Positions 48,314 to 64,000 of a DNA stretch of 64,000 nucleotides are shown here, one piece after another. Each line of letters opens with the position of its first letter. The first letter of the stretch is position 1. The notes beneath the pieces are model-generated. The model did not search any database. It was given only the letters and a program-made list of their open reading frames with translations, and was not told the origin of the DNA. Made by a program: the position numbers and the translations under genes. The DNA lies in the sequence record MZ443771.1. The stretch is one strand, 5' to 3'.

Positions 48314-48318
48314 ATAGA

Positions 48319-48558
48319 TCAAAGCTGTTCAGCGGTAATCTGCCCAGCTTGATACAGTTCCCGTTTGCGCGTTTTCCACGATGAGGAAAGTTCAGAGAAG
48401 AACTCTCTCAGGCGGTCATCGTCCAGTTCAAACGGTTGTGCCACGCCATACTTCTCGCACATTGCTTCGTATGCGGTCACGTATTCCTGTTGAAGGAATG
48501 ACTTCTCAGCGCTAACGCTAACGTACTGCTGCGCTGTCAGAGCTACAGATACTTGCAT
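48319..48558 (-). CDS. small hypothetical protein
   Basis: RBS gaggatgg; flanked by its own motif B and a terminator. Confidence 0.7.
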   Translation of the reverse strand: MQVSVALTAQQYVSVSAEKSFLQQEYVTAYEAMCEKYGVAQPFELDDDRLREFFSELSSSWKTRKRELYQAGQITAEQL

Positions 48559-48593: not shown

Positions 48594-49193
48594 TCAAACG
48601 AATTTCAAAACAAGGTCGTTGATAATCACTGCTTTCGACTGGTCAGTAGGGGTGCTGCTATTCGCATACACCTTGCCGCCTTTCAGTCTGAGGTCTGCGT
48701 TCGAGTTCTCATCCCCAACAGAACATATTGCGAGGAACGCACAGCCTGCATCGTTGGTGCCTGTCTGCAAGTTGAGCGTATTCGAATATGCGCAAGCGAC
48801 GATACACCAAGTAGGCGTAGCGTCTTTGAGGAAGTAACTCGAACGATAGTCAGTGTTACTAGCAGCGGCCTTCATGTTCATAGCAGACGCAAGAAGCACA
48901 GGCACGTTGTTCGCATTGAGCGTCATCGCAGCCTTGTTACCTGCCACACCGCCAACGTAATCAGCAGCGTGGGCATTAAGCAACGGAGAGATACGCGTGT
49001 ACAATGCGTTACCACCAGCAAGCTGGGTAGCTTCGGCAAGCAGTGCCTGAACTTCTGCTTTAGTCGGCATCGTACCTGTATAGAACAGGATTGAGTTCGC
49101 AACAGTAGTGTAGTTCGTAGGAATAGCCGCAGACACCAAGCTGCTGAATGCGTTACGCATCATTGCGTTCGCAGTAGAGGGAAGCATTTTCAT
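48594..49193 (-). CDS. paralog-array virion protein, short type
   Basis: ILFYTGTMP...ATPTWC...SVGDENSNADLRL. Start reassigned to ATG 49193. Confidence 0.65.
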   Translation of the reverse strand: MKMLPSTANAMMRNAFSSLVSAAIPTNYTTVANSILFYTGTMPTKAEVQALLAEATQLAGGNALYTRISPLLNAHAADYVGGVAGNKAAMTLNANNVPVLLASAMNMKAAASNTDYRSSYFLKDATPTWCIVACAYSNTLNLQTGTNDAGCAFLAICSVGDENSNADLRLKGGKVYANSSTPTDQSKAVIINDLVLKFV

Positions 49194-49194
49194 A

Positions 49195-50103
49195 TCACAC
49201 ACCCTCCAGGATGTTATCCACGATACGAACGGTAAAATCAGAAGTAGCCATCTGACCGTACTGACCGATAGACGATACGCCGAGCACAAGGTCAGTGCCA
49301 ACATCAAGCACAAGCCCGTAGTAATCGTCCTGCACCTGACTGAGATATTGAGCAGTACCGGAAGGAATGCTCAGAGTCAGAGGCACAAGCACAACATGCG
49401 TGAATGCGGCTGTGACGAAATCGCTCGCTCGTTCTGCATAAGGCGTGAATGCCAACTGGTTATTGGTAGACGTACCGTTCATGCTCAGTCGGAGCTTACG
49501 CGCAGTGATATCCACATCGTTGATGCCAGTGACAACAGTGATGCGTGTCCACACTAACGTTGTAGGGTCCTGATACTCAAGGCGAATGTTGCCTGTATTG
49601 ATAGGCGTAGCATTCGGTACGAAGAACGAACGAAAACGCAGGGTGCGTCCGTAGTCGTACTCGACGATATCATTCGCATCATAAGATGGAGCGACACCAG
49701 TAGTGATATCAGAACAGGCTGCTAAGTTCGCCAGTACCTGCTGAGGAGTTTTGCTCCAACCGGGTGACGGGATATAGCGAGAGTATTCAGGGTAGACAGC
49801 AAACGTTGCAACAGCCTGTTTGTTCGTAGCATCGAATGCCATGCGGCCCTGACCGTACCCGCCAATCGGCATCAGACTGCGAACGCGAGAATACAGACGG
49901 CAGAGAATACCGTTCGCATCAGCAGTCTGGTTCTGGTACTTGAGTTCAACAGCGCAGCGAGAAGTCGCAATCAAGTCAGTGAGTGACTTGGGCATGTTCG
50001 CGCTACTACCGTTGCGGAAGAACGCTGCCCAGCCGCTTGAGTTTGTCGTAGTACCGGCAGTCTGTAGCAATTGATACAGCGCTTGCTTTTCAGAGACTAA
50101 CAT
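49195..50103 (-). CDS. paralog-array virion protein, long type with a discoidin-like insert
   Basis: EYDYGR...LEYQD...W...ARKLRL; C-terminal FTHVVLV...DVGTDLVL. Confidence 0.6.
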   Translation of the reverse strand: MLVSEKQALYQLLQTAGTTTNSSGWAAFFRNGSSANMPKSLTDLIATSRCAVELKYQNQTADANGILCRLYSRVRSLMPIGGYGQGRMAFDATNKQAVATFAVYPEYSRYIPSPGWSKTPQQVLANLAACSDITTGVAPSYDANDIVEYDYGRTLRFRSFFVPNATPINTGNIRLEYQDPTTLVWTRITVVTGINDVDITARKLRLSMNGTSTNNQLAFTPYAERASDFVTAAFTHVVLVPLTLSIPSGTAQYLSQVQDDYYGLVLDVGTDLVLGVSSIGQYGQMATSDFTVRIVDNILEGV

Positions 50104-50112
50104 AATGCCTCC

Positions 50113-50646
50113 TTAGAGTTTGATACGCATATCAGCTACACGTACAGGCTGACCGGCAGTAACAGTACCACCGAGAATACGCAGGTCGGCAGTTGAGTTC
50201 TCATCACCGACAGTACCTGTCATGAGTGCATAACAGTTAGTGCCCGCAACGAAGTTTGTCCATGAATCACCGGCAGAAGCAACAGAAGTCACACGCATCA
50301 GGAACCACGTTGGCGTACCGCTTGTTGCGATAGTCATCGTGTTCGGCTGGCTGCTGAACGGCAGGTTGATGATGTTGTTATCGTAGTCCATGTTCGGTAC
50401 AAACGAAGACAGTGTGGCATCACCGAGGAAGTTCGATTGCGTTGCAAATGAGGAGAGAGCAGCAGCGGACCACGTGAACATCGTGTTAGTCGTAGACAGC
50501 ATCGCTTGTAACTGATCATCAGTCGGTGGCGTACCGGAGAACAGAGCGATATGCACGGTGTTTGCAGAGGCAGCAGACCCTGGGACTAAGCGCCAGTTGA
50601 GTGCAATCATTGCTTGCAGCGAGTTAAAGGCTTTAGAAACGCGCAT
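50113..50646 (-). CDS. paralog-array virion protein, short type
   Basis: IALFSGTPP...GTPTWF...TVGDENSTADLRILGG. Confidence 0.7.
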   Translation of the reverse strand: MRVSKAFNSLQAMIALNWRLVPGSAASANTVHIALFSGTPPTDDQLQAMLSTTNTMFTWSAAALSSFATQSNFLGDATLSSFVPNMDYDNNIINLPFSSQPNTMTIATSGTPTWFLMRVTSVASAGDSWTNFVAGTNCYALMTGTVGDENSTADLRILGGTVTAGQPVRVADMRIKL

Positions 50647-50647
50647 C

Positions 50648-51712
50648 TTAGTATACCTCCAGCACGACAGGTTTAAAGGTCACATTGAACGAGCCTACAG
50701 CTTGTTCCTGTCCAGGGTACACAGTTGCGTCATTCAACACAAGGTCAAAGCTAGCAGACTGTTTCAGATCGTCTGTAACTGTCAGGCCGTAGTGCGGGAA
50801 GATGCGGCCGTAAGACTGCGCGACAAGACCTGTAGAGATTGCAGTTGCGTTGTAGCTTGTACCCCACAGCAGAGGGAACATAACTGCATGTTGGATTTTG
50901 CCCAACGTACGCGGTGCAGTACCCGCAGCGTAATCGCCGTAGAAGTGCAGCGCATAAGTACCGATACCCAGAGGGAATGGGTTCGCTACAGCTTTAGACA
51001 CGATACGGAAGCGACGACCCTGAACAGTAGACGGCAATTGATAGAACTTCTCAGTAGCTACTGAGGTTTGGAACAGGTTCGTTTGCAGGTTGGTCACGTC
51101 TACCCACGAGCTACCCTGCTGCACTTGCAGGAAAGGTAAGTTTGCAGCGGTGTTGGCAAACAGGTTGTTCCCAGCAGTTGTGAGAGTGATGCCCGCCAGA
51201 GAGTTAATAACGACTTCCGCACCGAAGTCATACTCAGCCAGAGTCCATGTACCGTCTGCGTTCGCTTGTTTTACCACAGGCACAGATGCGTTCGTTGAAG
51301 GACTAGCGCATGGTTGCAGCGTAGCACTTGAAGTCGAAGCAACACGGTGCATCAGGATAGTAGCGTACAGCATGTCCAGTTGCAGACCGAAGATAGACAG
51401 GTTAGCTGCTACGTCTTGATACACAGTGCTGTAGGAAGCGAACGTCACTTTAGGCAGAACGCGTTTACCACGGAAGCCTTGTGCAGTAGTCCATGCCGGA
51501 GCAGGAGAGACCTGATAGTTAGGTGCTACAGCCGGTTGAATTTGCTGTAGACTTGCACCAAGAGGCTGCTGCGTACACATACGACCCGACACCATGTTGT
51601 TCAGCAGAGTCTGAATGTCGTAGTTAACAGGGTTAGGAAGATTCCCTTCCATAAAGGCACCGTACATAATGACCGGCGTGTTCTGATAGATAGGTAGGAT
51701 TTTCATATACAT
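50648..51712 (-). CDS. paralog-array virion protein, long type with a discoidin-like insert
   Basis: AEYDFGAEV...LQVQQGSSWVDV...GRRFRIV; RTLGKIQH; TVTDDLK. Confidence 0.65.
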   Translation of the reverse strand: MYMKILPIYQNTPVIMYGAFMEGNLPNPVNYDIQTLLNNMVSGRMCTQQPLGASLQQIQPAVAPNYQVSPAPAWTTAQGFRGKRVLPKVTFASYSTVYQDVAANLSIFGLQLDMLYATILMHRVASTSSATLQPCASPSTNASVPVVKQANADGTWTLAEYDFGAEVVINSLAGITLTTAGNNLFANTAANLPFLQVQQGSSWVDVTNLQTNLFQTSVATEKFYQLPSTVQGRRFRIVSKAVANPFPLGIGTYALHFYGDYAAGTAPRTLGKIQHAVMFPLLWGTSYNATAISTGLVAQSYGRIFPHYGLTVTDDLKQSASFDLVLNDATVYPGQEQAVGSFNVTFKPVVLEVY

Positions 51713-51732
51713 GCCCTTGGTTTAAAGACAGT

Positions 51733-51740
51733 TCAAATTA
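51733..51740 (-). promoter_or_regulatory. motif B variant (TAATTTGA)
   Basis: Intergenic, about 20 nt before ATG 51712. Confidence 0.4.
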
Positions 51741-51772
51741 ATGACGTGGCAGCCGAAGCCACCACGTGTGTC

Positions 51773-52297
51773 TTACAGTTGAATGGTAAGATCGAGGAAG
51801 CGGTATGCTTGACCTGTCTTAATCGTACCACCGATGAACTGTAGTTCTGCGTCAGACCCTTGAGCACCGACACTGCCAATCCAGAACGGTCCAGTAAGGC
51901 TTGCGCTGTAGCTGAACCCTGCCCAGTTGTTTGATGCGTTAGCAGGAAGAATACGCGCAACATAGAACGTAGGCGTACCGTCAGCAGCACCAACCAACGT
52001 AGCGGCCTGCCCAGAAAGAGGCAACGTGACTGTACGAGCAGTGACGTTCACTACTGGAGTGATTGCAGCAGACGCCAACACACCAAGGAAGTCTGTAGAC
52101 GTCAGGCCAAGATTAGCTGCCACCGTACTCCATGTAAGCAGACTGTTAACAGCACCTGGAGCCATGAGATCAAGTGCTTTACTGATCTTAGGAGCAGTGC
52201 CTTTGAACAGAGCAATGTGCAACGTGTTAGCAGCCAGAGCAGTTGCAGGGAATGCAGCGTTCATCTGGGCAAGAGAGATACCTTTGTTGCTAATCAT
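51773..52297 (-). CDS. paralog-array virion protein, short type
   Basis: IALFKGTAP...GTPTFY...SVGAQGSDAELQFIGG. Confidence 0.7.
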   Translation of the reverse strand: MISNKGISLAQMNAAFPATALAANTLHIALFKGTAPKISKALDLMAPGAVNSLLTWSTVAANLGLTSTDFLGVLASAAITPVVNVTARTVTLPLSGQAATLVGAADGTPTFYVARILPANASNNWAGFSYSASLTGPFWIGSVGAQGSDAELQFIGGTIKTGQAYRFLDLTIQL

Positions 52298-53370
52298 ACG
52301 CCCCTCCCTACGAGTGCATCTTGCTTAATGCGGAACGTTGGCACAGGCGCTTCACCTAACGCAATGCTGTATGTCGTATCTGGCATCACGATATCGTTGC
52401 TTGCAGCGAGCTTGAGATCGTCAGTGACGGTCAGATGTGTCATACCGAAGTAACGTCCGGCAACCGTTGCTTCTGCGGCAGGCCAGTTGAAGTGCCACTG
52501 GGTGCTGTTAGCATAACTACTGTTTGCCATGAGTGTGAGCAGAGACATGTGCTTGTACTTGCCCAACGTGCGAGGCTTCGTTCCTGTGTAGTTGCCATAG
52601 AACTGCAAGCTAAACGGATAGTGGCCTGTAGTAGACCACGGCCATGCGGTAGTCTTGTTCACCAGACGCCACTTCTGCGCTTTGATAGACACAGGCAGGT
52701 TGTACGCTACTGGTGACCAGTTGGTGGTTGTGCGGACGTTCGTGTAACAGTCAACTGCATCAACCCACTGACCATCAACATAGGCCTGCAGGAAAGTATT
52801 CGCAGTGCCGAGCACCATCAGGCTACTTACCATAGAACCGATAGATACGCCCACCAGCCCTTTGAGTTCCATCTCAGCGCCGAAGTCATATTCAGCAATC
52901 AACCAGTTGCCAGCTTCTGTCAGGTTGTACTGAGGACTCAGGTACAGACTGGTATTGATGGAGAACTGAGTCTGAATAGTCCCCATCTTATGTGCGAGAA
53001 TAGTTGTCGCCACGCTCTCATTGTATTTACCAACAGTCGCAGCGAAACGGTTGTCGAGTGCAGGCAGTCGCACTTTAGGAACGATGCGCGATAGCACATT
53101 GATAGCAGCACCATATCCTAGCGACCCACTGAACTCGACCCACGCAGGATAGAAGTTGGTGCAGAGGAACGTTGACGCTGTTACTGGCTGATACCGCCAG
53201 CTAAACGGTGCAGTAGACATAAATGTTTTCTGAAACAGACGCATAGCGATAGCGTCATTGAACGTGCTATGAATGCCACGCTCGCCATTTGCTGGCACGT
53301 CTGTATCATACAGCAGACCGAGCGCAAACACCGACGCTACGTTTGCGGCTTGATACGGAAAGAGTTCCAT
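52294..53370 (-). CDS. paralog-array virion protein, long type with a discoidin-like insert
   Basis: AEYDFGAEM...LQAYVDGQWVDA...AQKWRLV; RTLGKYKH; TVTDDLK. Confidence 0.65.
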   Translation of the reverse strand: MELFPYQAANVASVFALGLLYDTDVPANGERGIHSTFNDAIAMRLFQKTFMSTAPFSWRYQPVTASTFLCTNFYPAWVEFSGSLGYGAAINVLSRIVPKVRLPALDNRFAATVGKYNESVATTILAHKMGTIQTQFSINTSLYLSPQYNLTEAGNWLIAEYDFGAEMELKGLVGVSIGSMVSSLMVLGTANTFLQAYVDGQWVDAVDCYTNVRTTTNWSPVAYNLPVSIKAQKWRLVNKTTAWPWSTTGHYPFSLQFYGNYTGTKPRTLGKYKHMSLLTLMANSSYANSTQWHFNWPAAEATVAGRYFGMTHLTVTDDLKLAASNDIVMPDTTYSIALGEAPVPTFRIKQDALVGRGV

Positions 53371-53379
53371 AGAGCGTCC

Positions 53380-53961
53380 TTAGCTGAATGAGATGTTGTT
53401 GATGTTGACAGTACCATTCAGGTTGAATGTACCGTCACCGTTGTCAGTCAAAGGTACACCCATGCTGATCAAGTCTTGTGGCGTGAACTCAAACACCGTA
53501 GTTGTAGACACAGTTCCCGCGGCGTATGCAGAAGTGCTGTTACTGACTAACAGGTACATGCGATTGAATGCTTTCGCGTAGCTGAAACGTCCGAGTAGAC
53601 CGTTCAGGTCGAGAGTACGCTTGCCGCCACCAACATTGATAACACGCACAGTACCAGACGAAATGAACGATGCGTCCATGACACAGTTAGGCAAATTCGC
53701 TGCGAGATATGTGCGCAACGAAGTGAGACTGAACAGAGCTTGTGACTGGTTTGTCCAAACGCTGTCTGGAATTGTGTCGCCCGTGGAGAACACGATAGCA
53801 GCAGAAGGTTCAGCCGATATAGGAACGCCACCAGACTGATAGGCACCAGCTTGGTTGTATGCAGTAAACGCACTCGGTACCCAGGGCATATCCACGGTAA
53901 TAGATGCAGTAGAACTAAGCGAGTCACCACGCATGTTGAGCATTGCTTTAGAGATATACAT
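53380..53961 (-). CDS. paralog-array virion protein, divergent short type
   Basis: MYISKAML N-terminus like the other short members; IVFSTGDTIP. Confidence 0.55.
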   Translation of the reverse strand: MYISKAMLNMRGDSLSSTASITVDMPWVPSAFTAYNQAGAYQSGGVPISAEPSAAIVFSTGDTIPDSVWTNQSQALFSLTSLRTYLAANLPNCVMDASFISSGTVRVINVGGGKRTLDLNGLLGRFSYAKAFNRMYLLVSNSTSAYAAGTVSTTTVFEFTPQDLISMGVPLTDNGDGTFNLNGTVNINNISFS

Positions 53962-54863
53962 CAGCTACTCCTTTGCGTGAAGCGAAGTTTAGGGCAGTAC
54001 ATCAGCGTCTTCTGGTTAGGAATAACCTGATCGACTAACTTGAACGGACCCTGATTGCCGACAGCACCAGCAGTGAACATGATCTCGTCACTGTAGTTAA
54101 TGTCGCCATGAGTGAACGTGTTGCAGTGCGCAAGAGCAGCCCACGTAGGTGAAGTAACTGCCGTAGCACTAGGCACATCCACAGAACTAAGCAGCACACG
54201 CATAGCAGACTGCGCGGACGTGCTGGTGGACTTGTAACGGTAGCGCTTAGAAGCACGAGGCGCACTTAGCACTAGGCAGGTTGTGTCGCCTGCAATAGCT
54301 GTAGCACTACCGAGTTGATATTCAGTTAGACCGTCATCAGACAGAGCCACCAGCTGGAACGCATCACCAACTGTATTGTTGAATTTGATATGCGTTACGG
54401 TAACTGCCGTGTCGAACTCGAAGTCTATATCAGTGCCCAGATTACGCGGAGCAGGAACGTAGCCAGTACCTGCACCCATAATCAATGTGATGCTACGATC
54501 AGTAAAACCTGAACGAGTGATACGATGAGGCACAAGTTGAGATACCACAAGAGCAGCAGTGCCAATGGTCCCATAGTACGATACCCCTTTAGGGATGTAC
54601 TGAGATTGAAGGGCAAGTGCAATCACGTTGCCGTTTTCAATTCCAGTAATAGGGTTTCGCACGATACCGATAGACTGATTGTACATATCAGCAAGTGACT
54701 TATTGTTGAAGGCTGCTTCGAAGCCCTCTTTTGAGGTAGGCAGTTTGCCGCTAAACGCAAAAATATTCCACCCAGCACCTACATTGGGATCTTGCAGGAG
54801 AGTGTTATTTGTGTTTGTGCCAACAACTGCCTGAGCCATGTTACGTGTGTTAATGATTTTCAT
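53961..54863 (-). CDS. paralog-array virion protein, long type
   Basis: IFAFSGKLP...DFEFDTAVTVTH...KRYRY...PTWAAL...AVGNQG. Confidence 0.6.
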   Translation of the reverse strand: MKIINTRNMAQAVVGTNTNNTLLQDPNVGAGWNIFAFSGKLPTSKEGFEAAFNNKSLADMYNQSIGIVRNPITGIENGNVIALALQSQYIPKGVSYYGTIGTAALVVSQLVPHRITRSGFTDRSITLIMGAGTGYVPAPRNLGTDIDFEFDTAVTVTHIKFNNTVGDAFQLVALSDDGLTEYQLGSATAIAGDTTCLVLSAPRASKRYRYKSTSTSAQSAMRVLLSSVDVPSATAVTSPTWAALAHCNTFTHGDINYSDEIMFTAGAVGNQGPFKLVDQVIPNQKTLMYCPKLRFTQRSS

Positions 54864-55318
54864 TAGCTCACCACCGGTGCAACAGATTTGTTATTAGCTT
54901 TCGTGTCAGACAGGTCAAGCTGAGGAACAGACACGCGGAACACGATGTTATCGAACAGAGGTTCAATCGTCTGGTCAGTAACGAAAGAACCTGTAGCGAT
55001 AGGAACATCAATACGAGACTTCCCAGGGTTCGACGCAAAGTTGCGTGGTGTGAACTTGGACTGAACCTGATTCACACCTGCGGGAACAAGCACAATGCTG
55101 TCTGAACTGCTCACCTGCTGATTGAGAATCTGCGACCAGCGATACGCCTGAATAGCAAGCGTTACCGTATCTGCGACACGCTCTGCTGGGTGCAGTGCGG
55201 CCTTCTCATTCGTCATAGGCTTTGACGGTTGTGAGTTCGTACTGATCTCAATCTGAGACATAACGAACACGAAGTCAGCAAAGAGATCTGGATCATACGC
55301 AATGACAGGTACAAACAT
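54863..55318 (-). CDS. hypothetical protein within the array
   Basis: Coupled to both neighbours. Confidence 0.6.
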   Translation of the reverse strand: MFVPVIAYDPDLFADFVFVMSQIEISTNSQPSKPMTNEKAALHPAERVADTVTLAIQAYRWSQILNQQVSSSDSIVLVPAGVNQVQSKFTPRNFASNPGKSRIDVPIATGSFVTDQTIEPLFDNIVFRVSVPQLDLSDTKANNKSVAPVVS

Positions 55319-55319
55319 G

Positions 55320-56408
55320 TTATGCTCCTTGTCTCACGCTGTAGCGGTTGATTATTGGCGTGAACGCAGCGTTACCACCTCCGTAGCCACCTTGAACCAT
55401 AACGTTAGTCGCTACAGGCTTCTGCAACGCATACGTGAACTGATCCACCTGAGTACCGTTCAAGAACACAGTGTGCGTGTTGGTAGTTGCGTCATACACA
55501 TATTTGATGTGGACAACACTACCAGACCAGAGCGCAGAGTACGGAGAAATTGAGCGCGTGACTTTAGCAGGCGCGGTTCCACCGTTAACGTTGTTCCAGA
55601 TGAGCAGACCACGTTCGTTAGAACGGTCGAAAGCAATGACCATTCGGTTAGACGCAGCGCCGCCGATATTGAGCAGACACCATTCAGCGTAATCAGAGTT
55701 ACCTGATTGGTGGTAGTCACACTCGATTGTGAATGACTTGCTGCAATCAAAGGCAGTTGGCGTTGAAGTCGTGCAGATACCGTTAGTGCCCAGGTCGATG
55801 CCGCTACCATCAGCAGCAACTTTCAAAGCGCCTGACGTTGTGTATGCGTTGCCAATGTAATCGGTAAACGCGCCAGTGTTGAAGCTACCTGTGTCGAACG
55901 CTATCGTTTCGTTGCCAGCAAGCCATGTCACGCCAGCAGTCTCAGTCCAGAAGCTCGACAGGCTAATGTTGAACGCAAGAATGGTGATTTGCGTCTTATA
56001 GCCGTTCGGGTCATACTTGATATTCAAGTCAGGATAGAGCAGCGTAACGTCAGTGCCTACAGTCAGACACACAGGCAGAATGCCGCCGAGAATCAAATGG
56101 GTTGGCACACCTTCGGCTGTAGCAGTAAGCAGACAGTCAGAGACAGCGATCTTAGTGCGGTCGATTGTGCGCACACAGTTGGTGCCTTTCGCAAGCACGG
56201 TACAAATGCCTGTAGATGCAGCGAGCGCCGCGTCGAATACATAGCCTGCACCTGTCTGCGTCTGATAGTTCAGGCATTTGTTGATATCAGCTTCGGTAAA
56301 ACCGGCATTCAACTTGACCAGATAGCAGGACTTATCGTCTGCTGTAGCCTGAGCGAACAAACGAGTCAACTGAGGTACAACAGAGTTTGCGAATAACTTA
56401 TAGTTCAT
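55320..56408 (-). CDS. array core domain fused to a C-terminal LamG/concanavalin-like domain
   Basis: Core GVPTHLI...TVGTDV; C-terminal FTIECDY...VHIKYVYD...VFLNG. Start reassigned to ATG 56408. Confidence 0.6.
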   Translation of the reverse strand: MNYKLFANSVVPQLTRLFAQATADDKSCYLVKLNAGFTEADINKCLNYQTQTGAGYVFDAALAASTGICTVLAKGTNCVRTIDRTKIAVSDCLLTATAEGVPTHLILGGILPVCLTVGTDVTLLYPDLNIKYDPNGYKTQITILAFNISLSSFWTETAGVTWLAGNETIAFDTGSFNTGAFTDYIGNAYTTSGALKVAADGSGIDLGTNGICTTSTPTAFDCSKSFTIECDYHQSGNSDYAEWCLLNIGGAASNRMVIAFDRSNERGLLIWNNVNGGTAPAKVTRSISPYSALWSGSVVHIKYVYDATTNTHTVFLNGTQVDQFTYALQKPVATNVMVQGGYGGGNAAFTPIINRYSVRQGA

Positions 56409-56409
56409 G

Positions 56410-57366
56410 TCATACCTCGGTAGATAGACGGAGCTGGGCGACAGATGCAAACTCACCAGGACCGAGTGATGTGCTTAACAACTCGATAGGCTTGCCACTA
56501 CCAATCGCACCAACTTCACATGCGAAGTAAGTAGGCACGTAGCTGCCGTTTGCCAGAGCACCATAGTTCGTGTCTTGAATGACAACGATAGCACTCTTAA
56601 TCGACTTGTACGCTGCGGTGCGACCTACATCCGATGCAGTCACAGGCAGAACGCGACGAGTACCTGACGTCTGAATGAAACGATAACGGTTCGACTGAGG
56701 GATAGACGTGGCAATCACGTTACCTTCTTGGTTAGCAGCAATCGACCAAGCGACAGCAGTACCAACTGTACCAGAGCCATCAATAGGAGCAATCGTGCCC
56801 GCCGCGGCGGTTGATATGTCACCCACATCAGACAGCACTGCGTCAATCGTAACAGCGAAGTCATACGTCAGGTCAGTAGTAGACAGATGAATGCCGGGCA
56901 TCAGTGCATCGTGCGGCACACCTGCATAGTCCCACGGTCTGAACCCAGCAGGACCAATTCCCCACAGAGCTTTGTTACCTGCATCGTTGCTGGTGTTGTA
57001 CGCTGTCTGAATCTGAACAGCAGCAACACCGTTATAGCCTACAGGACGCGCTTTCGAAGGATAGTGAATTGTAGCACCGTTCTTGATCTCATACACATGA
57101 CCAGAGCGAGCTTTCCAGCCTTCTTGCTGATCCATCAGAGGCAGCAGACCTTCTGTAGTTGGACGCAGCACAAGGCGCGTAGCAGCAACAGCGTTGTCAT
57201 ACAGGTTACGCATGTCGAGCAGATGCTGGGAGAAGTTACCTTGATCGGCAATTTCCGTATCGAAGAAGAACACGTTAACAGTCTGACCGTTAGCCGCATT
57301 CGATGCCCAGCCAGTGCCTAAGTTAAGCACACTGAAAGGCAGTAGGTTGTGACCTAAGATGCGCAT
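56410..57366 (-). CDS. paralog-array virion protein, long type
   Basis: VFFFDT...LTYDFAVTIDAV...NRYRF...EVGAIGSG. Confidence 0.6.
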   Translation of the reverse strand: MRILGHNLLPFSVLNLGTGWASNAANGQTVNVFFFDTEIADQGNFSQHLLDMRNLYDNAVAATRLVLRPTTEGLLPLMDQQEGWKARSGHVYEIKNGATIHYPSKARPVGYNGVAAVQIQTAYNTSNDAGNKALWGIGPAGFRPWDYAGVPHDALMPGIHLSTTDLTYDFAVTIDAVLSDVGDISTAAAGTIAPIDGSGTVGTAVAWSIAANQEGNVIATSIPQSNRYRFIQTSGTRRVLPVTASDVGRTAAYKSIKSAIVVIQDTNYGALANGSYVPTYFACEVGAIGSGKPIELLSTSLGPGEFASVAQLRLSTEV

Positions 57367-57863
57367 TAGAACTCCTTAGAATCTTTGACGACTGTAGCGA
57401 GGAATTTACCGTTGCGCAGATTCGCTGCGGACAGAATCAAGTCAGCACCAGAGCCAGCAGCACCGATAGTCAGAATCAGGAAGCCGCCGTAAGGTGTGCT
57501 TGCAATGTCCTTGTTAAACACAATAACATTGTATGCTGTCAGCAAGTCAGAGATAGTCCCGGCAAAAGTACCAGACAGAGTTGCGCTCAGTCGGAACTTA
57601 TACTTGTTATCTTGACCGTGAATCCAGCGCACAGGGTTAACAGTAACAGAAGTCAGGTCGAGCACCGCAGTAGCACCGATAGCTGTTTGCACTGTAGTGC
57701 CGTCGGCAACAACAATGTTAGCAGGGTCAGGCACTTTAGCGAGGCAGATAGTCTTCTGCATATTCGAGAGGCCGTACTTCAACGGCGGATCAGAAGCAGG
57801 ACGTTTACCTGCATCGGGGATCGTAATGCCGTTGGCGACCAGAGGGAATGAAACTATTTCCAT
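57366..57863 (-). CDS. paralog-array virion protein, short type
   Basis: C-terminal LTIGAAGSGADLIL. Confidence 0.6.
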   Translation of the reverse strand: MEIVSFPLVANGITIPDAGKRPASDPPLKYGLSNMQKTICLAKVPDPANIVVADGTTVQTAIGATAVLDLTSVTVNPVRWIHGQDNKYKFRLSATLSGTFAGTISDLLTAYNVIVFNKDIASTPYGGFLILTIGAAGSGADLILSAANLRNGKFLATVVKDSKEF

Positions 57864-57879
57864 TTTAGATCTCCAGTTA

Positions 57880-57900
57880 ACTCGCTATAAATTACTGACA
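57880..57900 (-). promoter_or_regulatory. motif B (TGTCAGTAATTTATAGCGAGT)
   Basis: Shares TGTCAGTAATTTA with 31855-31867 and CGAGT with 5336-5340. Confidence 0.6.
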
Positions 57901-57919
57901 ACAAAGGTTCGTGTAGGAC

Positions 57920-58972
57920 TTAACACCTAAAGGAGCGCTCAATCGCCAGCGGTGTGTAGTCTCTCAATGCAGCTACAGGTTTCTCATTTGGCAGAATCGC
58001 TGAGGCTACATCAAAATCAATTCCCGCTTTAGCCACCAGCACATAGACTGGAGCGCCATAAGCAAACGCTATAGGCATTGCTCCCCATGTGATAAAGTAT
58101 GCGGGAGTATCTTCATGAGTACCTTGTCCATAGTACACAAGATTTTCATTCGCAGGGGCTGTCCCATAGGAACCGGGAGAGTATGATGTTGTATACGACC
58201 AACCTCCACCCGAAAAGTACGTCGTACCGTAAACAACAGATCTATACGGCTGAAATAGACGAGGTGCTCGCGCGAAAGAGTATGCACCATGGTTATAAGG
58301 TTGATTGGCTGTTATGCCTGGCAATGACTGAGATGCAGTAACAAGGACTGCTGTATCTGCAACTCTGTCCATTGAGTTCACGCCTATATTTTGCAGATAG
58401 GACGTTGTGTTTCTTGACCAATAACCGATACCGCTGCCACCACCGCCATAGATCGTCCCTGACTCTGAGAGCGTTGTATTTGCGTTGGCCGATGGTGTCG
58501 TATACAAAGACACACTGTAGCTGGTGTTATCAAACGACGGTAGTACCATATCAGAGTAGGCAGGCACTGTAGGATTGCTTGTGCCTAACGTATCAAGCAG
58601 ACTACCAGACCCATTGAGTGCACCGCCACCTGTATCATCTTTTCCTATGGCATAGTATCGACAGAACAGGTTGAACGCAGTTGTGTTGCGACTTTGGTTG
58701 GTCTGATCGAATGTAGACTCCTTTCTCACATTCGGAACATAGTTGTAGAACAACTTATTACCAGACCAACCAGCTCCTCTGACACACAGCATATTCTTAT
58801 CTGCATCAACTGAGGCACAGAAAGAGAGTGACGTGTTTATCTTGTCCCACATGTCAGAGAACGAAGACTTGTCAGTTGGTTTTGGTGTGCTATCAGAAAA
58901 CAGAAACATGCGCTTTCTGGCTATCTCAACTTTCTTCTCCAACAGCTGGGCACCGTTTGAAACAAAAAGCAT
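57920..58972 (-). CDS. divergent array member, putative fibre/receptor-binding protein
   Basis: MLFV...MFLFSDSTPKP N-terminus and ITWGAM...LVAKAGIDF C-terminus. Confidence 0.55.
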   Translation of the reverse strand: MLFVSNGAQLLEKKVEIARKRMFLFSDSTPKPTDKSSFSDMWDKINTSLSFCASVDADKNMLCVRGAGWSGNKLFYNYVPNVRKESTFDQTNQSRNTTAFNLFCRYYAIGKDDTGGGALNGSGSLLDTLGTSNPTVPAYSDMVLPSFDNTSYSVSLYTTPSANANTTLSESGTIYGGGGSGIGYWSRNTTSYLQNIGVNSMDRVADTAVLVTASQSLPGITANQPYNHGAYSFARAPRLFQPYRSVVYGTTYFSGGGWSYTTSYSPGSYGTAPANENLVYYGQGTHEDTPAYFITWGAMPIAFAYGAPVYVLVAKAGIDFDVASAILPNEKPVAALRDYTPLAIERSFRC

Positions 58973-58981
58973 AATGCGTCC

Positions 58982-60019
58982 TTACATCAGATACAGCGTC
59001 TTAGAACCAAATGGCAGTTCAGATTCGATGTTCAGCACAGCAACATCACCAGTGGCCGCGGGTGCGGTCTGTATAATGTCTTGGCCAATCTTGGCACGAA
59101 GCATATATCCTTGTCCGTTACATTTAAACATCATCATGCACGAAGACAAGGTTACGTCAGGTGTGTTTGATTTACCAGTCACAGCAACTCGCATGTTGAA
59201 TGCGGCTGCGGCAGTTCGATCATATCCACCAATACCGTTCGACACTGTAGGAACATCCCACGCAGTGTTTTGGTTGAGGCCGTTAGCGCTATATCGTTTA
59301 CCTACAGGACGCACGAACACAATGTGGTCGGCTGCAACATTCTGTACAGGCATTGATTGCATAGGCGTAGCAGTAGGTGATATGTAGGCGTAAGCGTTCG
59401 TAGTAGTCTCTTGTCGTGTGCTCAGGTTAAGCGCAGCATTCATAAAACCTGCTTCGTAGCCGCTGTACGTTCCCCAGAACGGGTCAGTGCTTATCGAATA
59501 CTGAATACCAGCTTTGGAGCTGTACGTTTCAATAGTAGTAGACTGTCTAATGCCGTTAGGGAAAACGAGCATTGACTGCGAAGGCCAGTAGTAGCCTGTT
59601 TCGCAAGTGTCTCTGCTTGGACCGTTCCAGCCGTTGAACACAGGGTTACCGTTCGACCACTGCTGGGATGTACCTACAGGTGAATCATATACACAGAAGT
59701 AACGCTCGGCCGTAGCTTTTGGCGTCTGCACAGTCGTGTAACTGTTATGCGCAGCATTCACGCCAGAAATCAAGTTAGCACTACGCGCAGGGTAGAAGTA
59801 GTTATCTTTGATGCCACTCATAGGACTGAGCGTGATAGACTGAGCGTTTGTGTCTGAACTGTTTCCCCAAGCCCTTACATTTGGAATCTTAGCAAGGTAG
59901 TGGCTTTCGTCAAGATGCGCGTCGGACAAGTCTGTCTGATCGTCAAAGTACATGGCACGATGCAGTGCCAGCGTAGCGATGTTGTTTGCTTTCTTGTTGT
60001 GGTACGTTGCAAAGAGCAT
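58982..60019 (-). CDS. divergent array member, putative fibre/receptor-binding protein
   Basis: MLFA...AMYFDD; ATG 60019 after ggagg. Confidence 0.55.
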   Translation of the reverse strand: MLFATYHNKKANNIATLALHRAMYFDDQTDLSDAHLDESHYLAKIPNVRAWGNSSDTNAQSITLSPMSGIKDNYFYPARSANLISGVNAAHNSYTTVQTPKATAERYFCVYDSPVGTSQQWSNGNPVFNGWNGPSRDTCETGYYWPSQSMLVFPNGIRQSTTIETYSSKAGIQYSISTDPFWGTYSGYEAGFMNAALNLSTRQETTTNAYAYISPTATPMQSMPVQNVAADHIVFVRPVGKRYSANGLNQNTAWDVPTVSNGIGGYDRTAAAAFNMRVAVTGKSNTPDVTLSSCMMMFKCNGQGYMLRAKIGQDIIQTAPAATGDVAVLNIESELPFGSKTLYLM

Positions 60020-60042
60020 CGTAACCTCCTTATAAATAGGTA

Positions 60043-60972
60043 TCACAGAGCAAACTGGTTACGAGCGTACAGGGAGAACTCTTTCACTGAGGTAACTGTA
60101 GCATTCATACCAGCCAGAGTGTTTCCGTGTGCGAAGTCTCCATCGGCACTAGAAAGAACGACAGCGCGAAGTGTTGGCCCCTCGTCAACTACAAGCAAAC
60201 CCTTAGTCAACTTGATTGCAGACTCAACGCCACCACTGAAAGCGAAATCACTGGACACAGCATTAGCATACGTTGACGTGTCGCTACGCGTTGGCGTCGT
60301 AATTCGGTTCTGACCGCTGATTAGAAACGAGGGTGACCACTTGAACGCAACAGTCGTGCCATTCGTATAGGTAGGTGCGAATATGTTTATACTGTTATTG
60401 TCGTTGTAGGCCCAAGATGCAATAGTGGAAGTGGCCTCCGTTGGACCAGAAGGAGTAAACTCTCGGTGCCAATGCGTCCATGCTGCCGCATACTGGAGAC
60501 TCTGTTTAGAGGCTTGCGAGGTGAGTTTCGGGAATGTCATTGTCGTGTTAGTGAATGCGTAAGCACCAACATAAGCAGGACGTACCCATATAGGACCTTC
60601 ACGTTCACCAGCAGCACCTTGAGGGAATGGTATAGAGTTCTCAAGGAAATCAATCTCCGTGCGAGGATTCAGGCCACGCCCCGGATGCAACATTGTCTGT
60701 ATGAAACGCTTATCCGTAGTGAAGTCTGGGTCTTCGGACAGGAATGATATCCGCGCAAAGTGAACTCGTTGTGTGCCACCAGCAACGCCTGCCACAGCAC
60801 CCATCATGCGGTGAGTAACAAGAGTGCTGCCTGACTGAGACTTCACAGTTGCGCGTGTGCTTCTTATCGTATCTTTGAGCGCTGCCATTGAAGCGAAGTT
60901 CAAAGGTGTGGCATCGTCGTAGAAATAGAGAAGTTTTCTTAGGTCTTGTTGTGCAGGGAATATGTATTGCAC
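60043..60972 (-). CDS. divergent array member
   Basis: LLYFYDDATP N-terminus. Confidence 0.5.
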   Translation of the reverse strand: MQYIFPAQQDLRKLLYFYDDATPLNFASMAALKDTIRSTRATVKSQSGSTLVTHRMMGAVAGVAGGTQRVHFARISFLSEDPDFTTDKRFIQTMLHPGRGLNPRTEIDFLENSIPFPQGAAGEREGPIWVRPAYVGAYAFTNTTMTFPKLTSQASKQSLQYAAAWTHWHREFTPSGPTEATSTIASWAYNDNNSINIFAPTYTNGTTVAFKWSPSFLISGQNRITTPTRSDTSTYANAVSSDFAFSGGVESAIKLTKGLLVVDEGPTLRAVVLSSADGDFAHGNTLAGMNATVTSVKEFSLYARNQFAL

Positions 60973-61027
60973 TATCCATCTCCCAGAAGGTAAAAAGGCC
61001 CGTACCGTTAAGATACAGGCCAGAGGG

Positions 61028-61609
61028 CTACACCAACAGACGACCTGCGATGGTGATCGCTACACCGTTAAGTGTTGTGTCAGCAGTGTCAGGCGCAACT
61101 ACACGCAACTGGTCGCCAGCAACAAGAATGATCTCTTGATCCTGATACGCAGCAAGCGGTGTAAACACACCAGTCTTCGAGCCAGCACCAAACGTCACAG
61201 TACCAAGCTGAATAACTGCTTGGGTTGCTGAGTCGTATGCACTGATCTTAAACGCAGCCGCAGCAGTAGCCGCAATGTCAGCGTTGGCCATAGAGCCGCC
61301 GAAGTTTTTGATGATTGCAGTTGTGCGGACAGACAGGTAGCGAGCGATCTCCTGACCACCTGCATAACGCTTGAGCACACTCATGCCTACATCATAGGGA
61401 TTTACAGACTGCAACTGATTAACCCACTTGGCGCGTACTTGACTGTAGACGTACAGGCCAGGCTGGTTAGCGCCAGCTACAGCGGTCAGGTTCCATACGC
61501 GACCGTTGCTTGGGTTAGATGGAAAGGTAGGCCCAGATGAGTTTGGATCTCCCGGTGCGCGTGTAATCTGCGCCTGTTCGCCCGCTAATTGAATACCAAA
61601 AGCGTACAT
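61028..61609 (-). CDS. putative tail-fibre-associated structural protein
   Basis: FPSNPSNGRVW...LYVY...KW module; RBS ggag. Confidence 0.55.
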   Translation of the reverse strand: MYAFGIQLAGEQAQITRAPGDPNSSGPTFPSNPSNGRVWNLTAVAGANQPGLYVYSQVRAKWVNQLQSVNPYDVGMSVLKRYAGGQEIARYLSVRTTAIIKNFGGSMANADIAATAAAAFKISAYDSATQAVIQLGTVTFGAGSKTGVFTPLAAYQDQEIILVAGDQLRVVAPDTADTTLNGVAITIAGRLLV

Positions 61610-61620
61610 TGTTTATCTCC

Positions 61621-61839
61621 TTAGGCGATTCGCGCTTCGCCCGTAACTGCATACGGGAAGACGATTTTTACCGTGTTGTTATCAACGATGATAACGTCAA
61701 GAGGTAGCACTTGATGGAGTTTACCATCAGGCATATTCACGCACGTTGTCACAGCAACTGGACGCCCGAAGTTGTGTGTAATCGTCCATTCAGATGCTGG
61801 CGTTTCTTGCTTGTAGCTACGCCCCATTGAATAGTTCAT
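61621..61839 (-). CDS. small structural protein with one W.ITHN.G module
   Basis: SEWTITHNFGRPVAV...PLDVII.DNNTVKIVF...GEARI. Confidence 0.6.
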   Translation of the reverse strand: MNYSMGRSYKQETPASEWTITHNFGRPVAVTTCVNMPDGKLHQVLPLDVIIVDNNTVKIVFPYAVTGEARIA

Positions 61840-61846
61840 AAGTTCC

Positions 61847-62752
61847 TCACATATCGAAGATGTATTGTGACTGAATACTGGATGATAGAGCGGCCGTACC
61901 GTAACCATCAAGCACAGGCGTCACATGCGCTAAGTCGCTCTCTGCAACCAATGCAATGAGCAACGTGCTTTTCTCATTGACGAAAGCAGCCATTCCCCAT
62001 GTAGGAGCAGACACGCCGGGAGTACCACCAGTGATAGGATGATACAAGTTTTGTGTGCCCCAGTAGATAGAGAAGAAAGTGCCGCCTGAGTTGTTGAAGT
62101 TGATATTCCTATATGTGACTGCGTACTGCAACCTGTTGGCTGGAATGCCGTTGGCACCCATAACAATGTTACCGTTGCTCGACCATGAATACGAAGGACC
62201 AGCGACGTTAGTGAACGAGTCCAATGTCTCAGGGTACACGAATACGCCCATATTGGTTGTATACATGTTGTTGCCCTGTTGACCGTTAAGCTGACCGTTA
62301 GCAAGAATATTCAGTGTTCGGTCTATACCATAAGCAGCTCTCGCTTGCGGCACACTCTCACCCGTTGGCACAGTAATCATACCTAGGGGATCACTCAGAT
62401 TGAGAGCAAACTGACGTTCCATGTATCGGTAGCTGGGCACTGTCGGTTGATTCACAGGAGCGAGTGTTCCTGATACTGTACCGTTATTGCTGGCATACGT
62501 GTGGCTAACCAAACGTGTATGTAACCAGCGACGTGTACCATCAGCACTGACACCGGCTGCTGGGTTAAGCGGGATCTCTCCGTTTGTCGGATAGTCTCTG
62601 GCGCTCGTCACAGATTTTTCAGCACACAACTTAACGAAACTGTTCCATGTCAAAGTACCCATGTCTGGCTTAGGCGTGGACGCTTCGAACAGGAACAGGC
62701 TTCGTTCTATCATATGCTTTTGAGCGGTACGTCTTGACGGCACAAAAAGCAT
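61847..62752 (-). CDS. divergent array member
   Basis: MLFV...LFLFEASTPKP...PTWGMA...LIALVAESDL. Confidence 0.55.
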   Translation of the reverse strand: MLFVPSRRTAQKHMIERSLFLFEASTPKPDMGTLTWNSFVKLCAEKSVTSARDYPTNGEIPLNPAAGVSADGTRRWLHTRLVSHTYASNNGTVSGTLAPVNQPTVPSYRYMERQFALNLSDPLGMITVPTGESVPQARAAYGIDRTLNILANGQLNGQQGNNMYTTNMGVFVYPETLDSFTNVAGPSYSWSSNGNIVMGANGIPANRLQYAVTYRNINFNNSGGTFFSIYWGTQNLYHPITGGTPGVSAPTWGMAAFVNEKSTLLIALVAESDLAHVTPVLDGYGTAALSSSIQSQYIFDM

Positions 62753-62764: not shown

Positions 62765-63361
62765 TTAGTACAGGATGACAGTACCAGACTGCGCACTATC
62801 GAACGTGATGGTGAGCTGGCTGTTGCTGTCATGTACGATTGACTTAGGTTGGACCTCTTCCGTACCCTGATAGATGCGCACCGCTGGGTGATAGCCGAGG
62901 TTGTGAGTAACAACCCATACAGCTTCATCAGTGAATGATGTGGTGAACGCTACGGTAGGAGTAGGCAGACCGCTTTCGATACCAGACAGAAGCACAGCGG
63001 TACCGGCAACGGGTTCAGGGAACAGCACGATAGTCGTGTTTGCATCCTGAGCTTTGATGGAGGAAGGCTGAACCACTTCGCCGTTCTCGTCGTAGCACTG
63101 CACGATAGGCGTAGCAGTATTCATGTTGTGCGCGATTTCCCAGCGAGACGACGCAGATGCCTGAGCATAACGGTACATCGTCATTTGCTGCGTCAGTGGC
63201 ACCCAGATTGGCAGAGTTTCGAACTCAACACAGAACATAAGACGCTTGTCCATGAAGATTGCCATGCCGGGCTGCGGGTTCTCAGGCCAGTCAGTTACTT
63301 CTGCGAACTTAAAGTTCTTGATTGAGCCGAACGCTAAGTCTAAGCTCCCGATGACTTTCAT
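62765..63361 (-). CDS. structural protein with two W.ITHN.G modules
   Basis: RWEIAHNMN... and VWVVTHNLGYHP...; start reassigned to ATG 63361. Confidence 0.6.
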   Translation of the reverse strand: MKVIGSLDLAFGSIKNFKFAEVTDWPENPQPGMAIFMDKRLMFCVEFETLPIWVPLTQQMTMYRYAQASASSRWEIAHNMNTATPIVQCYDENGEVVQPSSIKAQDANTTIVLFPEPVAGTAVLLSGIESGLPTPTVAFTTSFTDEAVWVVTHNLGYHPAVRIYQGTEEVQPKSIVHDSNSQLTITFDSAQSGTVILY

Positions 63362-63380
63362 AAATCTTCTCCTGAAAGGT

Positions 63381-63408
63381 AAAAAGGGCAGGCAGATGCC
63401 CACCCTTT
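63381..63408 (-). terminator. Rho-independent terminator
   Basis: On the - strand: AAAGGGTGGGC-ATCT-GCCTGCCCTTT-TT. Confidence 0.75.
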
Positions 63409-63429
63409 ATTTTATGCTACTGAGTCGAA

Positions 63430-64000
63430 TTACTCTGCTGGCGCAACGTAGGCGTTAGCACCAGTCACGAATGCAATTGCGACTTTCTTAGCAGTGGTCA
63501 GCTCAACGCGCAGGCTGTTAGCGTCGATGAACACGATCTCATCAGGAATGATCTGATAACCGGTGTCGTCAACAACAGTAACGGTACCGTACTTCACGCC
63601 AGCGTTGTGGGTGAAGGTGTGCGCTGTAGCAGCAACATCACCGCTAGCGGTTTTGTCGTACTGGTACAGTTTAGCAGCGGAGCCGCCAGCAGAAGCTGCG
63701 ATTGTATCAACAACGAACTTCTTGCTTACCGCAGAGTTGTCTGTGTAGTCTGCGCTATCACCGGTCAGGGTGATTTCAGCAACAGAGCCACCGGTCGCGT
63801 CGATGAAGCCGCCAGCAGTTTTAACCGCTGCAACGTCAACAGCGATTTTGCTATTGGTAGTGTCCTGTTTCAGGCCATCACCCAGAGCGGCAGCAGCAAT
63901 CTGGTCGTAACCAACGCCACCAGCAGCAATTGCCAGACCATCAACAGAACGTGCCAGAGTAGCGCCGTCCAGTTTCACGCGGGTAGAACCTGCGTTATCT
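63430..64000 (-). CDS. 3' end of a tail fibre-like structural protein (5'-truncated)
   Basis: Frame is open to base 64000. Ala/Gly-rich GDGL repeats and a C-terminal FTHNAG module. Confidence 0.65.
   Translation of the reverse strand, partial: DNAGSTRVKLDGATLARSVDGLAIAAGGVGYDQIAAAALGDGLKQDTTNSKIAVDVAAVKTAGGFIDATGGSVAEITLTGDSADYTDNSAVSKKFVVDTIAASAGGSAAKLYQYDKTASGDVAATAHTFTHNAGVKYGTVTVVDDTGYQIIPDEIVFIDANSLRVELTTAKKVAIAFVTGANAYVAPAE

Follow-up and report, generated by a model that had tools for sequence, protein, structure and literature searches.

An array of paralogous genes beside the tail-fibre genes of Erwinia phage pEa_SNUABM_20 may encode bead-like and lectin-bearing subunits of peripheral tail structures

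Introduction

What is encoded by a long run of unannotated genes that lies next to the tail-fibre genes of a jumbo phage? The question is raised by a 64,000-nucleotide stretch of DNA (referred to here, at its full length, as the window), corresponding to bases 1-64000 of MZ443771.1, the 265.9-kb genome of Erwinia phage pEa_SNUABM_20 of the genus Alexandravirus. At 48594-62752 of this window there is an array of 18 annotated minus-strand coding sequences (CDSs), g79-g96, every one of which is labeled "hypothetical protein" (g79 to g98 are named after the locus tags pEaSNUABM20_00079 to _00098). It is proposed here, with a probability of about 0.55, that the array products are subunits of peripheral tail structures resembling chain-like fibres or garlands, that this set of subunits is expanded and diverges fast, and that it includes lectin-bearing long forms. 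Very probably, the array products are virion proteins of the tail periphery, as predicted from the comparisons described below.

The question has a wider bearing, as AD1 (Alexandravirus) and Y3 have been called "hairy" myoviruses on account of the hair-like appendages along their tails (PMC6143709, PMC13282480), and the accessible literature assigns no genes to such hairs. Most array genes resemble bead proteins and several carry sugar-binding-type domains, and therefore they may form the "hairs" of this phage group. A preliminary description of the locus, made from the sequence alone, had listed 15 array members (g79-g86, g88-g93 and g96), and had suggested that some 13 of these genes are built on one core, that they are arranged as pairs of a long and a short gene, and that they encode a modular surface-fibre system. 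The coordinates and lengths given there are correct: all 15 are annotated minus-strand CDSs, the short proteins having 165-199 amino acids (aa) and the long ones 300-362 aa.

Results

The short proteins resemble solved subunits of garlands and chain-like fibres

The short proteins g79, g81 and g83 form one family, referred to as S (BLASTP E-values of 7e-10 to 6e-24; all three in phrog_17152). The AlphaFold2 (AF2) model of g81 has a predicted local distance difference test (pLDDT) score of 87.6. Among the best 50 of the 202 fold matches of this model in the PDB with E≤10, the only significant one is 9rkv_A (Foldseek E 3e-5, probability 1.0, TM-scores of 0.50 (TMq) and 0.60 (TMt)). Entry 9rkv is a "tail fibers" entry of Agrobacterium phage 7-7-1, comprising the long fibre, the short fibre and the small garland protein gp014; in this phage, 36 gp014 homodimers ring the distal baseplate and contact both fibre types (PMC12796354). 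Chain 9rkv_A, having 141 aa, is probably gp014, because of its size and by elimination among the chains of the entry. The garland of phage Milano is formed by two paralogues of about 30% sequence identity, its fold has been likened to that of T4 gp8 and A511 gp105, and its arrangement has been described as beads on a string (PMC10811340).

A second link to solved structures comes from sequence profiles. A profile search of 1.84 billion cluster representatives identified at least 150 S clusters, nearly all of 160-215 aa, and broad S profiles of 145-179 sequences were built from such metagenomic cluster matches. The broad profile of 145 sequences matches PDB chain 44nx_B by sequence (E 1e-4, residues 27-143 of 147), and this alignment includes the N-terminal strand motif, the G-T-x-x-F strand and the G-T-V...S-G-A-D motif. 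Chain 44nx_B (147 aa) is gp40 of Pseudomonas podophage A1002, in which gp40 and gp41, a paralogue with 16% identity to it, supply eleven dimers that are attached in tandem to the extended fibre-dock region of a nozzle-rope protein, such that each dimer forms an augmented β-sheet with the rope, and the resulting chain-like fibre winds along the tail (PMC13730344). The proteins gp80 of phage GP4 and gp11 of phage VP1 are subunits of the same kind (PMC13730344). The profiles of the long family L (see below), of g90 and of g85 gave no match when compared with the PDB sequences. By profile similarity, S is related to a chain-like-fibre subunit, and this applies to S only, with g90 joining S as described below.

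These relatives also bear on the suggestion that the short members polymerise in a manner analogous to major and minor pilins. Polymerisation, in a sense, is in agreement with the solved structures, in which the subunits form dimers that are strung on a rope in chain-like fibres (A1002 gp40) or are assembled in garlands (7-7-1). The pilin analogy is not retained, because the solved relatives assemble otherwise, the known mechanism being that of beads on a string, attached by β-sheet augmentation.

Paralogy groups of the array

Direct comparison by BLASTP yields only S, a second family of long proteins, L (g82 and g84; E 9e-33, both in phrog_22190), and a weak N-terminal match between g91 and g96 (E 0.013). 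In PHROGs, 8 of the remaining 10 proteins are each placed in a family of their own, and PHROGs holds no family for g92, g93 and g96. When richer profiles, built from 13 genomes, are compared by hhalign, g80 is linked to L (94%) and g86 to g89 (89%), and the long paralogues of the cyanophage-like NCTB are linked to both g89 (94%) and L (89%). A third family, V, consists of g91, g92, g93 and, weakly, g96: g91 matches g92 (96%) and g93 (93%), the family including the extra copies in relatives holds together at 93-98%, and g96 is attached at 8-12%. An hhalign match of 99.8% between g88 and g89 was rejected as a sign of paralogy between them, being spurious because the fusion protein of phage JA11 (see below) had been included in the g89 alignment. 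The single family of about 13 genes that had been proposed is therefore replaced by three firm groups: S, L with its profile links to g80, g86 and g89, and V.

A core shared beyond the S family

The extent to which the S core recurs in the other array proteins is seen from comparisons with the S profile. The short protein g90 matches it at 83-90% (hhalign 89%, E 2e-6), and the long paralogues of NCTB match it at 94-97%, through separate, collinear N-terminal and C-terminal matches; such split collinear matches are the signature of a core that is split by an insertion. The C-terminal segment of g89 matches S at 71%, and g86 matches at 57% with its N-terminus and at 11% with its C-terminus. For g80, g82/g84, g85, g88 and the V subfamilies the values are 2-10%, always at collinear positions, and for unrelated neighbouring genes they are at most 1.3%.

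A set of 586 proteins, of which 98 were decoys taken from elsewhere in the window, was searched iteratively with hidden Markov models (HMMs). At convergence the search had recovered S, every g90 orthologue, the long proteins of NCTB, the g86 orthologue of phage Yoloswag and seven genes of the metagenomic locus. In this search g90 was taken in at iteration 3 and g86 and g89 remained borderline; none of the 98 decoys was recovered, the borderline zone included. The literal N-terminal motif is present in 8 of the 15 array proteins and in 1 of the 98 decoys, and the full three-part literal motif occurs only in S-type members. The g81 model also matches BFVD entries of 186 aa (Yoloswag) and 197 aa (JA13) with E-values of about 1e-3 and probability 1.0; assigned by their length only, these predicted structures are probably g85 orthologues.

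Taken by protein, the shared core is established at the profile level for S and g90, is likely for g86 and g89 from the profile matches and for g85 from the model comparison, and is indirect, through sequence links, for g80, g82 and g84. When V was compared with S and L by whole and segmented profiles, with 23 homologues added, the best value was 14% (its N-terminus with g86), which is not significant. The proposal of one core in about 13 genes thus holds for about four of them and is plausible for about six more, and it is unproven for V (four genes) and g88. Likewise, the motif similarity from which it had been deduced is borne out by profile comparison for S and g90, and finds only the 2-10% matches listed above for g80, g82/g84, g85, g88 and V.

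The long proteins and their binding-type domains

The AF2 model of g84 (pLDDT 84.6, predicted template modelling score (pTM) 0.87) has 41 listed PDB matches with E<1e-3 and probability about 1.0, of which the single-domain matches span 111-170 columns. These 41 are discoidin (F5/8 type C), neuropilin b1, factor VIII C2, CBM32 or glycosidase-borne galactose-binding-type domains. As modelled, g84 contains a discoidin/CBM32-like sandwich, and this fold may extend to g80, g82, g86 and g89, to which it is connected only via profile links over their central regions. In the g84 model, a strand, a helix and further strands precede the insertion, and a strand, a helix and two strands follow it; the impression from the model is that these flanking elements follow the same order as in S. 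An hhalign comparison of the long families with a Pfam-verified F5/8 type C region (of protein P0174, see below) gave values below 1%.

A search of all 20 proteins against Pfam gave only two matches of interest, both below threshold: Laminin_G_3 in g88 (E 6e-4, 20.4 bits, under the cut-off of 27.6; residues 208-349) and a galactose-binding domain in g97. From this sequence match, the C-terminus of g88 is a probable ConA-like lectin domain. The N-terminal module of g88 occurs alone in Yersinia phage fHe-Yen9-02 as the 150-aa protein 314c (L010:9238-9690, E 2e-37), and in JA11 a ConA-like domain of the g88 type is fused to a protein of the g89 type (JA11_080, L009:10680-12254). The metagenomic S protein P0174 (555 aa; contig SRR11566349_167562) is fused to two Pfam-verified F5/8 type C domains, and other metagenomic S proteins are fused to a PKD-like domain or to other extensions. 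From the module swaps of g88 and these S fusions it follows that a carrier core with exchangeable binding-type domains is a recurrent theme. Two further candidates, P0083 (1617 aa) and P0172 (1049 aa), with five matched stretches each, were set aside, as their Pfam pattern looks like low-complexity noise.

Of the idea that the long members display variable binding domains, the presence of binding-type domains is supported, as these are predicted in g84 (discoidin/CBM32-like) and g88 (probably ConA-like). The discoidin part of L is no more variable than the rest of L.

Arrangement of the long and short genes

Four pairs in which a long gene is followed by a short one are found in the direction of transcription: g86/g85, g84/g83, g82/g81 and g80/g79. 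The spacers within pairs measure -4 to +1 nucleotides (nt), and those between pairs 9, 66 and 9 nt. The consecutive pairs of the preliminary description thus exist, with tight junctions, but g86/g85 is not set apart as a pair, because g90 to g85 form one uninterrupted block in which all junctions are of -1 to +1 nt. Four terminator-like hairpins subdivide the array. The genes of this block and of the remaining pairs are the following.

g79, 48594..49193, minus strand, 199 aa: short "bead" of the S family, partner of g80; phrog_17152, BLASTP to g81 7e-10, S profile E 1e-38.
g80, 49195..50103, minus strand, 302 aa: long protein related to L; hhalign to g82/g84 94% over 166 columns, C-terminal segment matching S at 5.6%; the spacer to g79 is 1 nt.
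g81, 50113..50646, minus strand, 177 aa: short bead of the S family; the representative chosen for modelling.
g82, 50648..51706, minus strand, 352 aa: long protein of the L family; phrog_22190, BLASTP to g84 9e-33; its central domain would be discoidin-like, as judged from its paralogue g84.
Hairpin, 51744..51767, minus strand: GC-rich, between g83 and g82, weakly terminator-like.
g83, 51773..52297, minus strand, 174 aa: short bead of the S family; BLASTP to g81 6e-24, phrog_17152; overlaps the stop of g84 by 4 nt.
g84, 52294..53370, minus strand, 358 aa: long protein of the L family, with a predicted central discoidin/CBM32-like β-sandwich at about residues 150-290; phrog_22190.
g85, 53380..53961, minus strand, 193 aa: short protein with a probable S-like fold; no sequence signal (hhalign 2-3%).
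g86, 53961..54863, minus strand, 300 aa: long protein with the literal N-terminal and PTW motifs; central region related to g89.
g87, 54863..55318, minus strand, 151 aa: conserved ends and a variable middle; phrog_28837.
g88, 55320..56408, minus strand, 362 aa: a module of about 150 aa at the N-terminus, followed at the C-terminus by a probable ConA-like lectin domain (about residues 161-361).
g89, 56410..57366, minus strand, 318 aa: long protein with an S-like C-terminus; 85-91% identity across the genus.
g90, 57366..57863, minus strand, 165 aa: S-like short protein; 90-96% identity across the genus; 1-nt overlap with the start of g89.

The long-short pairs vary in copy number as units. In 11 phages and the window, comprising all relatives with genes of the g82/g84 type, the number of S genes equals the number of g82/g84-type genes plus one, the extra S gene being the partner of g80; NCTB falls outside this rule, with four S genes and none of the g82/g84 type. 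Yoloswag and JA11 have one pair fewer, and in fHe-Yen9-02 one pair is translocated. The pairs g84/g83 and g82/g81 look as if a unit of two genes had been duplicated in tandem, g82 being 30% identical to g84 and g81 33% identical to g83 (BLASTP).

Divergence, the V family and gene turnover

Comparison with orthologues in six relatives of the genus shows that the array is not uniformly conserved. The identities are 82-96% for g89, g90, g94 and g97, 51-89% for the four pairs, 48-80% for the V genes and at most 29% for g93. The alignment of the V proteins shows conserved N- and C-termini around a hypervariable middle that is rich in G, S, T and N. Between g90 and g94, the number of V-type genes ranges from none (fHe-Yen9-02) to five (Yoloswag); together with the low identity of g93, this makes the region a hot spot of gene turnover. 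The g96 slot is empty in AD1, pEa_SNUABM_1, pEa_SNUABM_7, Yoloswag, JA11 and fHe-Yen9-02. The features of this part of the array and of its upstream flank are the following.

g91, 57920..58972, minus strand, 350 aa: V family.
g92, 58982..60019, minus strand, 345 aa: V family; no PHROG.
g93, 60043..60972, minus strand, 309 aa: V family, the most divergent copy (at most 29% identity to any relative).
Hairpin, 60997..61021, minus strand: terminator-like, after g94, followed by a T-run that opens a 12-nt motif.
g94 (193 aa) and g95 (72 aa), 61028..61839, minus strand: outside the family; g94 has a weak tail-fibre PHROG match, and g95 matches g97 (hhalign 94%).
g96, 61847..62752, minus strand, 301 aa: probable V member, with mostly N-terminal similarity.
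g97 (198 aa) and the 3' part of g98 (541 aa, running past the window end), 62765..64000, minus strand: fibre-type virion proteins, the upstream flank of the array; g98 matches phrog_16122, "virion structural protein" (8e-192).
Hairpin, 63383-63408: terminator-like, between g98 and g97.

The 12-nt T-rich motif is found at 60986-60999 and 63375-63388 on the minus strand, where it follows two GC-rich terminator-like hairpins and lies immediately upstream of g93 and g97; it has 4 overlapping matches, compared with a chance expectation of 0.46. It could correspond to the motif B of the preliminary description.

Neighbourhood and distribution of the array

The array sits just downstream of the tail-fibre genes, a proximity that is expected of garland-type proteins, and the tail-fibre PHROG matches (g104, g105, g110 and g111) are upstream of it on the same strand. 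It is syntenic in all Alexandravirus genomes examined, and also in Sasquatchvirus Y3, Snuvirus, Yoloswagvirus, Salmondvirus JA11 and fHe-Yen9-02, as well as in NCTB and in one metagenomic contig. Searches of isolated phages by tblastn with distant S members and the NCTB S protein found nothing outside this same lineage, and Lu11, PaBG and the Rak2-like hairy phages were not detected by tblastn with S proteins.

Several observations concern the surroundings of the array. The metagenome contig SRR11566349_167562 (75 kb; L014, 1-21668) carries an array in which long and short genes alternate in the same way, and at least seven of its genes have the S core. A protein that is 79% identical to g81, P0002, is encoded on a 266-kb contig deposited under Salmonella enterica serovar Infantis, and therefore an Alexandravirus-like genome may be present inside a bacterial assembly. 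Directly downstream of the array there are four small genes, g75-g78 (47182-48558, minus strand), possibly a cassette for spanins or lysis: the N-terminus of g75 is of the lipobox type and its C-terminus is hydrophobic, the protein has a PHROG "lipoprotein" match, and g77 is annotated as a membrane protein in relatives. Between g98 and the tail-fibre genes lie g99 and g100 (L001:35081-36330), which carry the PHROGs labels "ABC transporter" and "membrane protein" (moron category) and have conserved counterparts in Yoloswag and fHe-Yen9-02. A domain of about 60 aa is common to g95 and g97 and to the C-termini of g98 and g103 (the latter at L001:37584-38408); the PHROG of g103 carries the label "HNH endonuclease", which looks doubtful because the N-terminus of g103 matches tail proteins.

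Discussion

A possible assembly of beads and lectin-bearing long forms

The results described above can be combined into a model of a peripheral tail structure. The short S-type proteins g79, g81 and g83, and probably g85 and g90, would be the beads, present in the virion as dimers that dock serially onto an extended polypeptide by β-sheet augmentation, by analogy with A1002 gp40/gp41, GP4 gp80, VP1 gp11 and the garlands of 7-7-1 and Milano. The long proteins g80, g82, g84, g86 and g89 would be subunits of the same kind, all sharing the core, in which a discoidin/CBM32-like sandwich is inserted between the N-terminal and C-terminal core elements, and g88 would carry its ConA-like lectin domain behind a short module. 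Each tight long-short pair may then produce a bead that is a heterodimer with a single lectin arm. An invariant element near the baseplate would be formed by the conserved g90/g89 pair, and exposure to the host, with binding of glycans, would fall to the divergent pairs and the hypervariable V proteins. As for the polypeptide that serves as the string, g87 is a speculative candidate, from its size and position only; it showed no profile link to the array families in the hhalign comparisons.

Comparison with known systems

The chain-like fibres of podophages (A1002 gp40/gp41, PDB entry 44NX; GP4 gp80, 8JOU; VP1 gp11) are built from small, β-rich subunits of 140-171 aa. The likeness to A1002 is seen in the match of gp40 by the broad S profile, with three conserved motifs aligned, in the presence of two divergent paralogues side by side, and in the location of the genes beside tail genes. 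The differences are that the array is encoded by a 266-kb myovirus, with at least five short and at least five long paralogues in place of one or two genes, that long forms with an inserted discoidin-like domain have not been described in the podophage systems, and that the rope protein is known there and none was found here; dimerisation and stringing are proposed for the array by analogy.

The garlands (7-7-1 gp014; Milano gp125/gp127) share with the array the fold match to the g81 model and the myovirus host. The Milano garland paralogues, being about 30% identical and forming homo- or heterodimers, are much like g79, g81 and g83, and garland proteins contact tail fibres, which can be compared with the position of the array directly beside tail-fibre genes. 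However, the sequence match is insignificant (E 0.55), the garland proteins are of about 140 aa compared with 174-199 aa here, the g81 model has an extra N-terminal helix, and there is one garland gene in 7-7-1 and two in Milano, without lectin insertions, in contrast to the array found here.

With respect to the discoidin, F5/8 type C and CBM32 domains, the 41 PDB matches of the g84 model share the galactose-binding-like β-sandwich, but sequence similarity to these domains was found neither with Pfam nor by profile comparison, and the domain is inserted within another domain, not appended to it. In size, T4 gp8 is roughly equal to the long array proteins. According to the authors of the Milano study, T4 gp8 and A511 gp105 share the garland fold and the beads-on-a-string arrangement (PMC10811340). 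The long-protein model was matched only via its discoidin-like domain.

Weighing the proposal against its alternatives

Several results weigh against the assignment of the array to chain-like fibres or garlands. The match of 44nx_B is modest (25 bits) and is seen only with the broad S profile, the narrow S profile giving no match among the PDB sequences. No candidate for the rope or string was found, self-comparison of g98, g107 and g108 showing no internal repeats. The direct match of g82/g84 to S is only 2%, such that the S-like core in these two proteins is indirect, resting on transitive profile links and on the order of predicted secondary-structure elements, and the four V genes have no significant profile link to S or L. 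The discoidin-like domain of g84 has no Pfam F5/8 type C match, and there is no above-cut-off Pfam match in any long protein; because the domain lacks this sequence-level match, ligand binding is a guess. Virion proteomics or imaging of these proteins was not found in the accessible literature. Moreover, T4 gp8 and A511 gp105 are absent among the best 50 of the 202 fold matches of the g81 model. This last result also bears on a different assignment, in which the array products are baseplate-proximal connectors of the T4 gp8 / A511 gp105 type (BW3-tail-fibre-network) that tie many fibres to the wedge, the many paralogues matching the many fibre types encoded upstream, and form no fibres, garlands or hairs. 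Such connectors would be in agreement with the fold that garland proteins share with gp8 and gp105, with gp105 dimers also being beads on a string along the wedge protein (PMC10811340), with the several tail-fibre genes that adjoin the array and with the high conservation of g89 and g90, as would be seen for structural adaptors. We nevertheless consider the connector assignment unlikely, as neither gp8 nor gp105 appears among those best 50 matches, the closest solved relatives being a distal garland and a chain-like fibre, and as lectin-type insertions and fast divergence suit exposed, host-facing parts better.

The order of the genes also allows a reading in which each long protein is a free-standing lectin-like adhesin or fibre tip and its short partner is an assembly chaperone or adaptor, which need not stay in the virion, as is the case for tail-fibre assembly proteins. 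The long-then-short order with tight or overlapping junctions, the gain and loss of pairs as units and the discoidin-like domain in the g84 model would all fit this, but the solved relatives of the short family are stoichiometric virion components, the S domain is directly fused to binding domains in metagenomic relatives, and the g90/g89 order is reversed, short then long, such that this reading is very unlikely. It is quite unlikely, too, that there is no single core and that at least three unrelated families (S, L and V) and singletons stand side by side, their motifs reflecting the common β-strand and turn composition of tail proteins. PHROGs, which is built by remote-homology clustering, keeps the families separate, V lacks a significant profile link to S or L, and g82/g84, g80, g85 and g88 reach only 2-10% with S; yet in all of these weak matches, which are collinear, N-termini pair with N-termini and C-termini with C-termini, and the values stand above those of unrelated neighbours (≤1.3%), the NCTB long paralogues bridge S and L (89-97%), g90 joins S (89%), and the N-terminal motif, present in 8 of 15 array proteins, is almost absent from the decoys (1 of 98). 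For V specifically, the absence of a common core is fully open.

Relation to the hairs of hairy myoviruses

A further step, beyond the assignment of the array to chain-like fibres or garlands, is to identify its products with the hairs. It is possible that the hairs of Y3, AD1 and their relatives are chain-like fibres in which a dozen or more different S-core beads, many of them with lectin-type insertions, are strung as long-short heterodimers on a rope, generating a heteropolymeric, combinatorial glycan-binding necklace along or around the tail, with g90/g89 at its base and the fast-evolving pairs and the V proteins, which vary in copy number, placed outward. As the relatives Y3 and AD1 have been described as hairy, this identification is a reasonable guess, but a tentative one that we rate as improbable; it is kept at this level because known chain-like fibres follow the tail (A1002) or extend as far as the capsid (GP4).

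Implications

With these comparisons, about 14 kb of "hypothetical" genes, conserved across a jumbo-phage lineage of plant-associated bacteria, gain a concrete structural hypothesis. Descriptions of the bead family have so far come from three podophages and two myophages of Agrobacterium, each having one or two such genes. In the array the family would have at least ten paralogues, joined to lectin-type domains by insertion as well as by fusion. If this is true, the S core would be a recognisable domain for annotators, for which there is no Pfam model and which is represented by at least 150 metagenomic clusters at 50% identity; candidate genes would be named for the hairs of hairy myoviruses; and the array would show a bead scaffold diversifying into a multivalent adhesin system.

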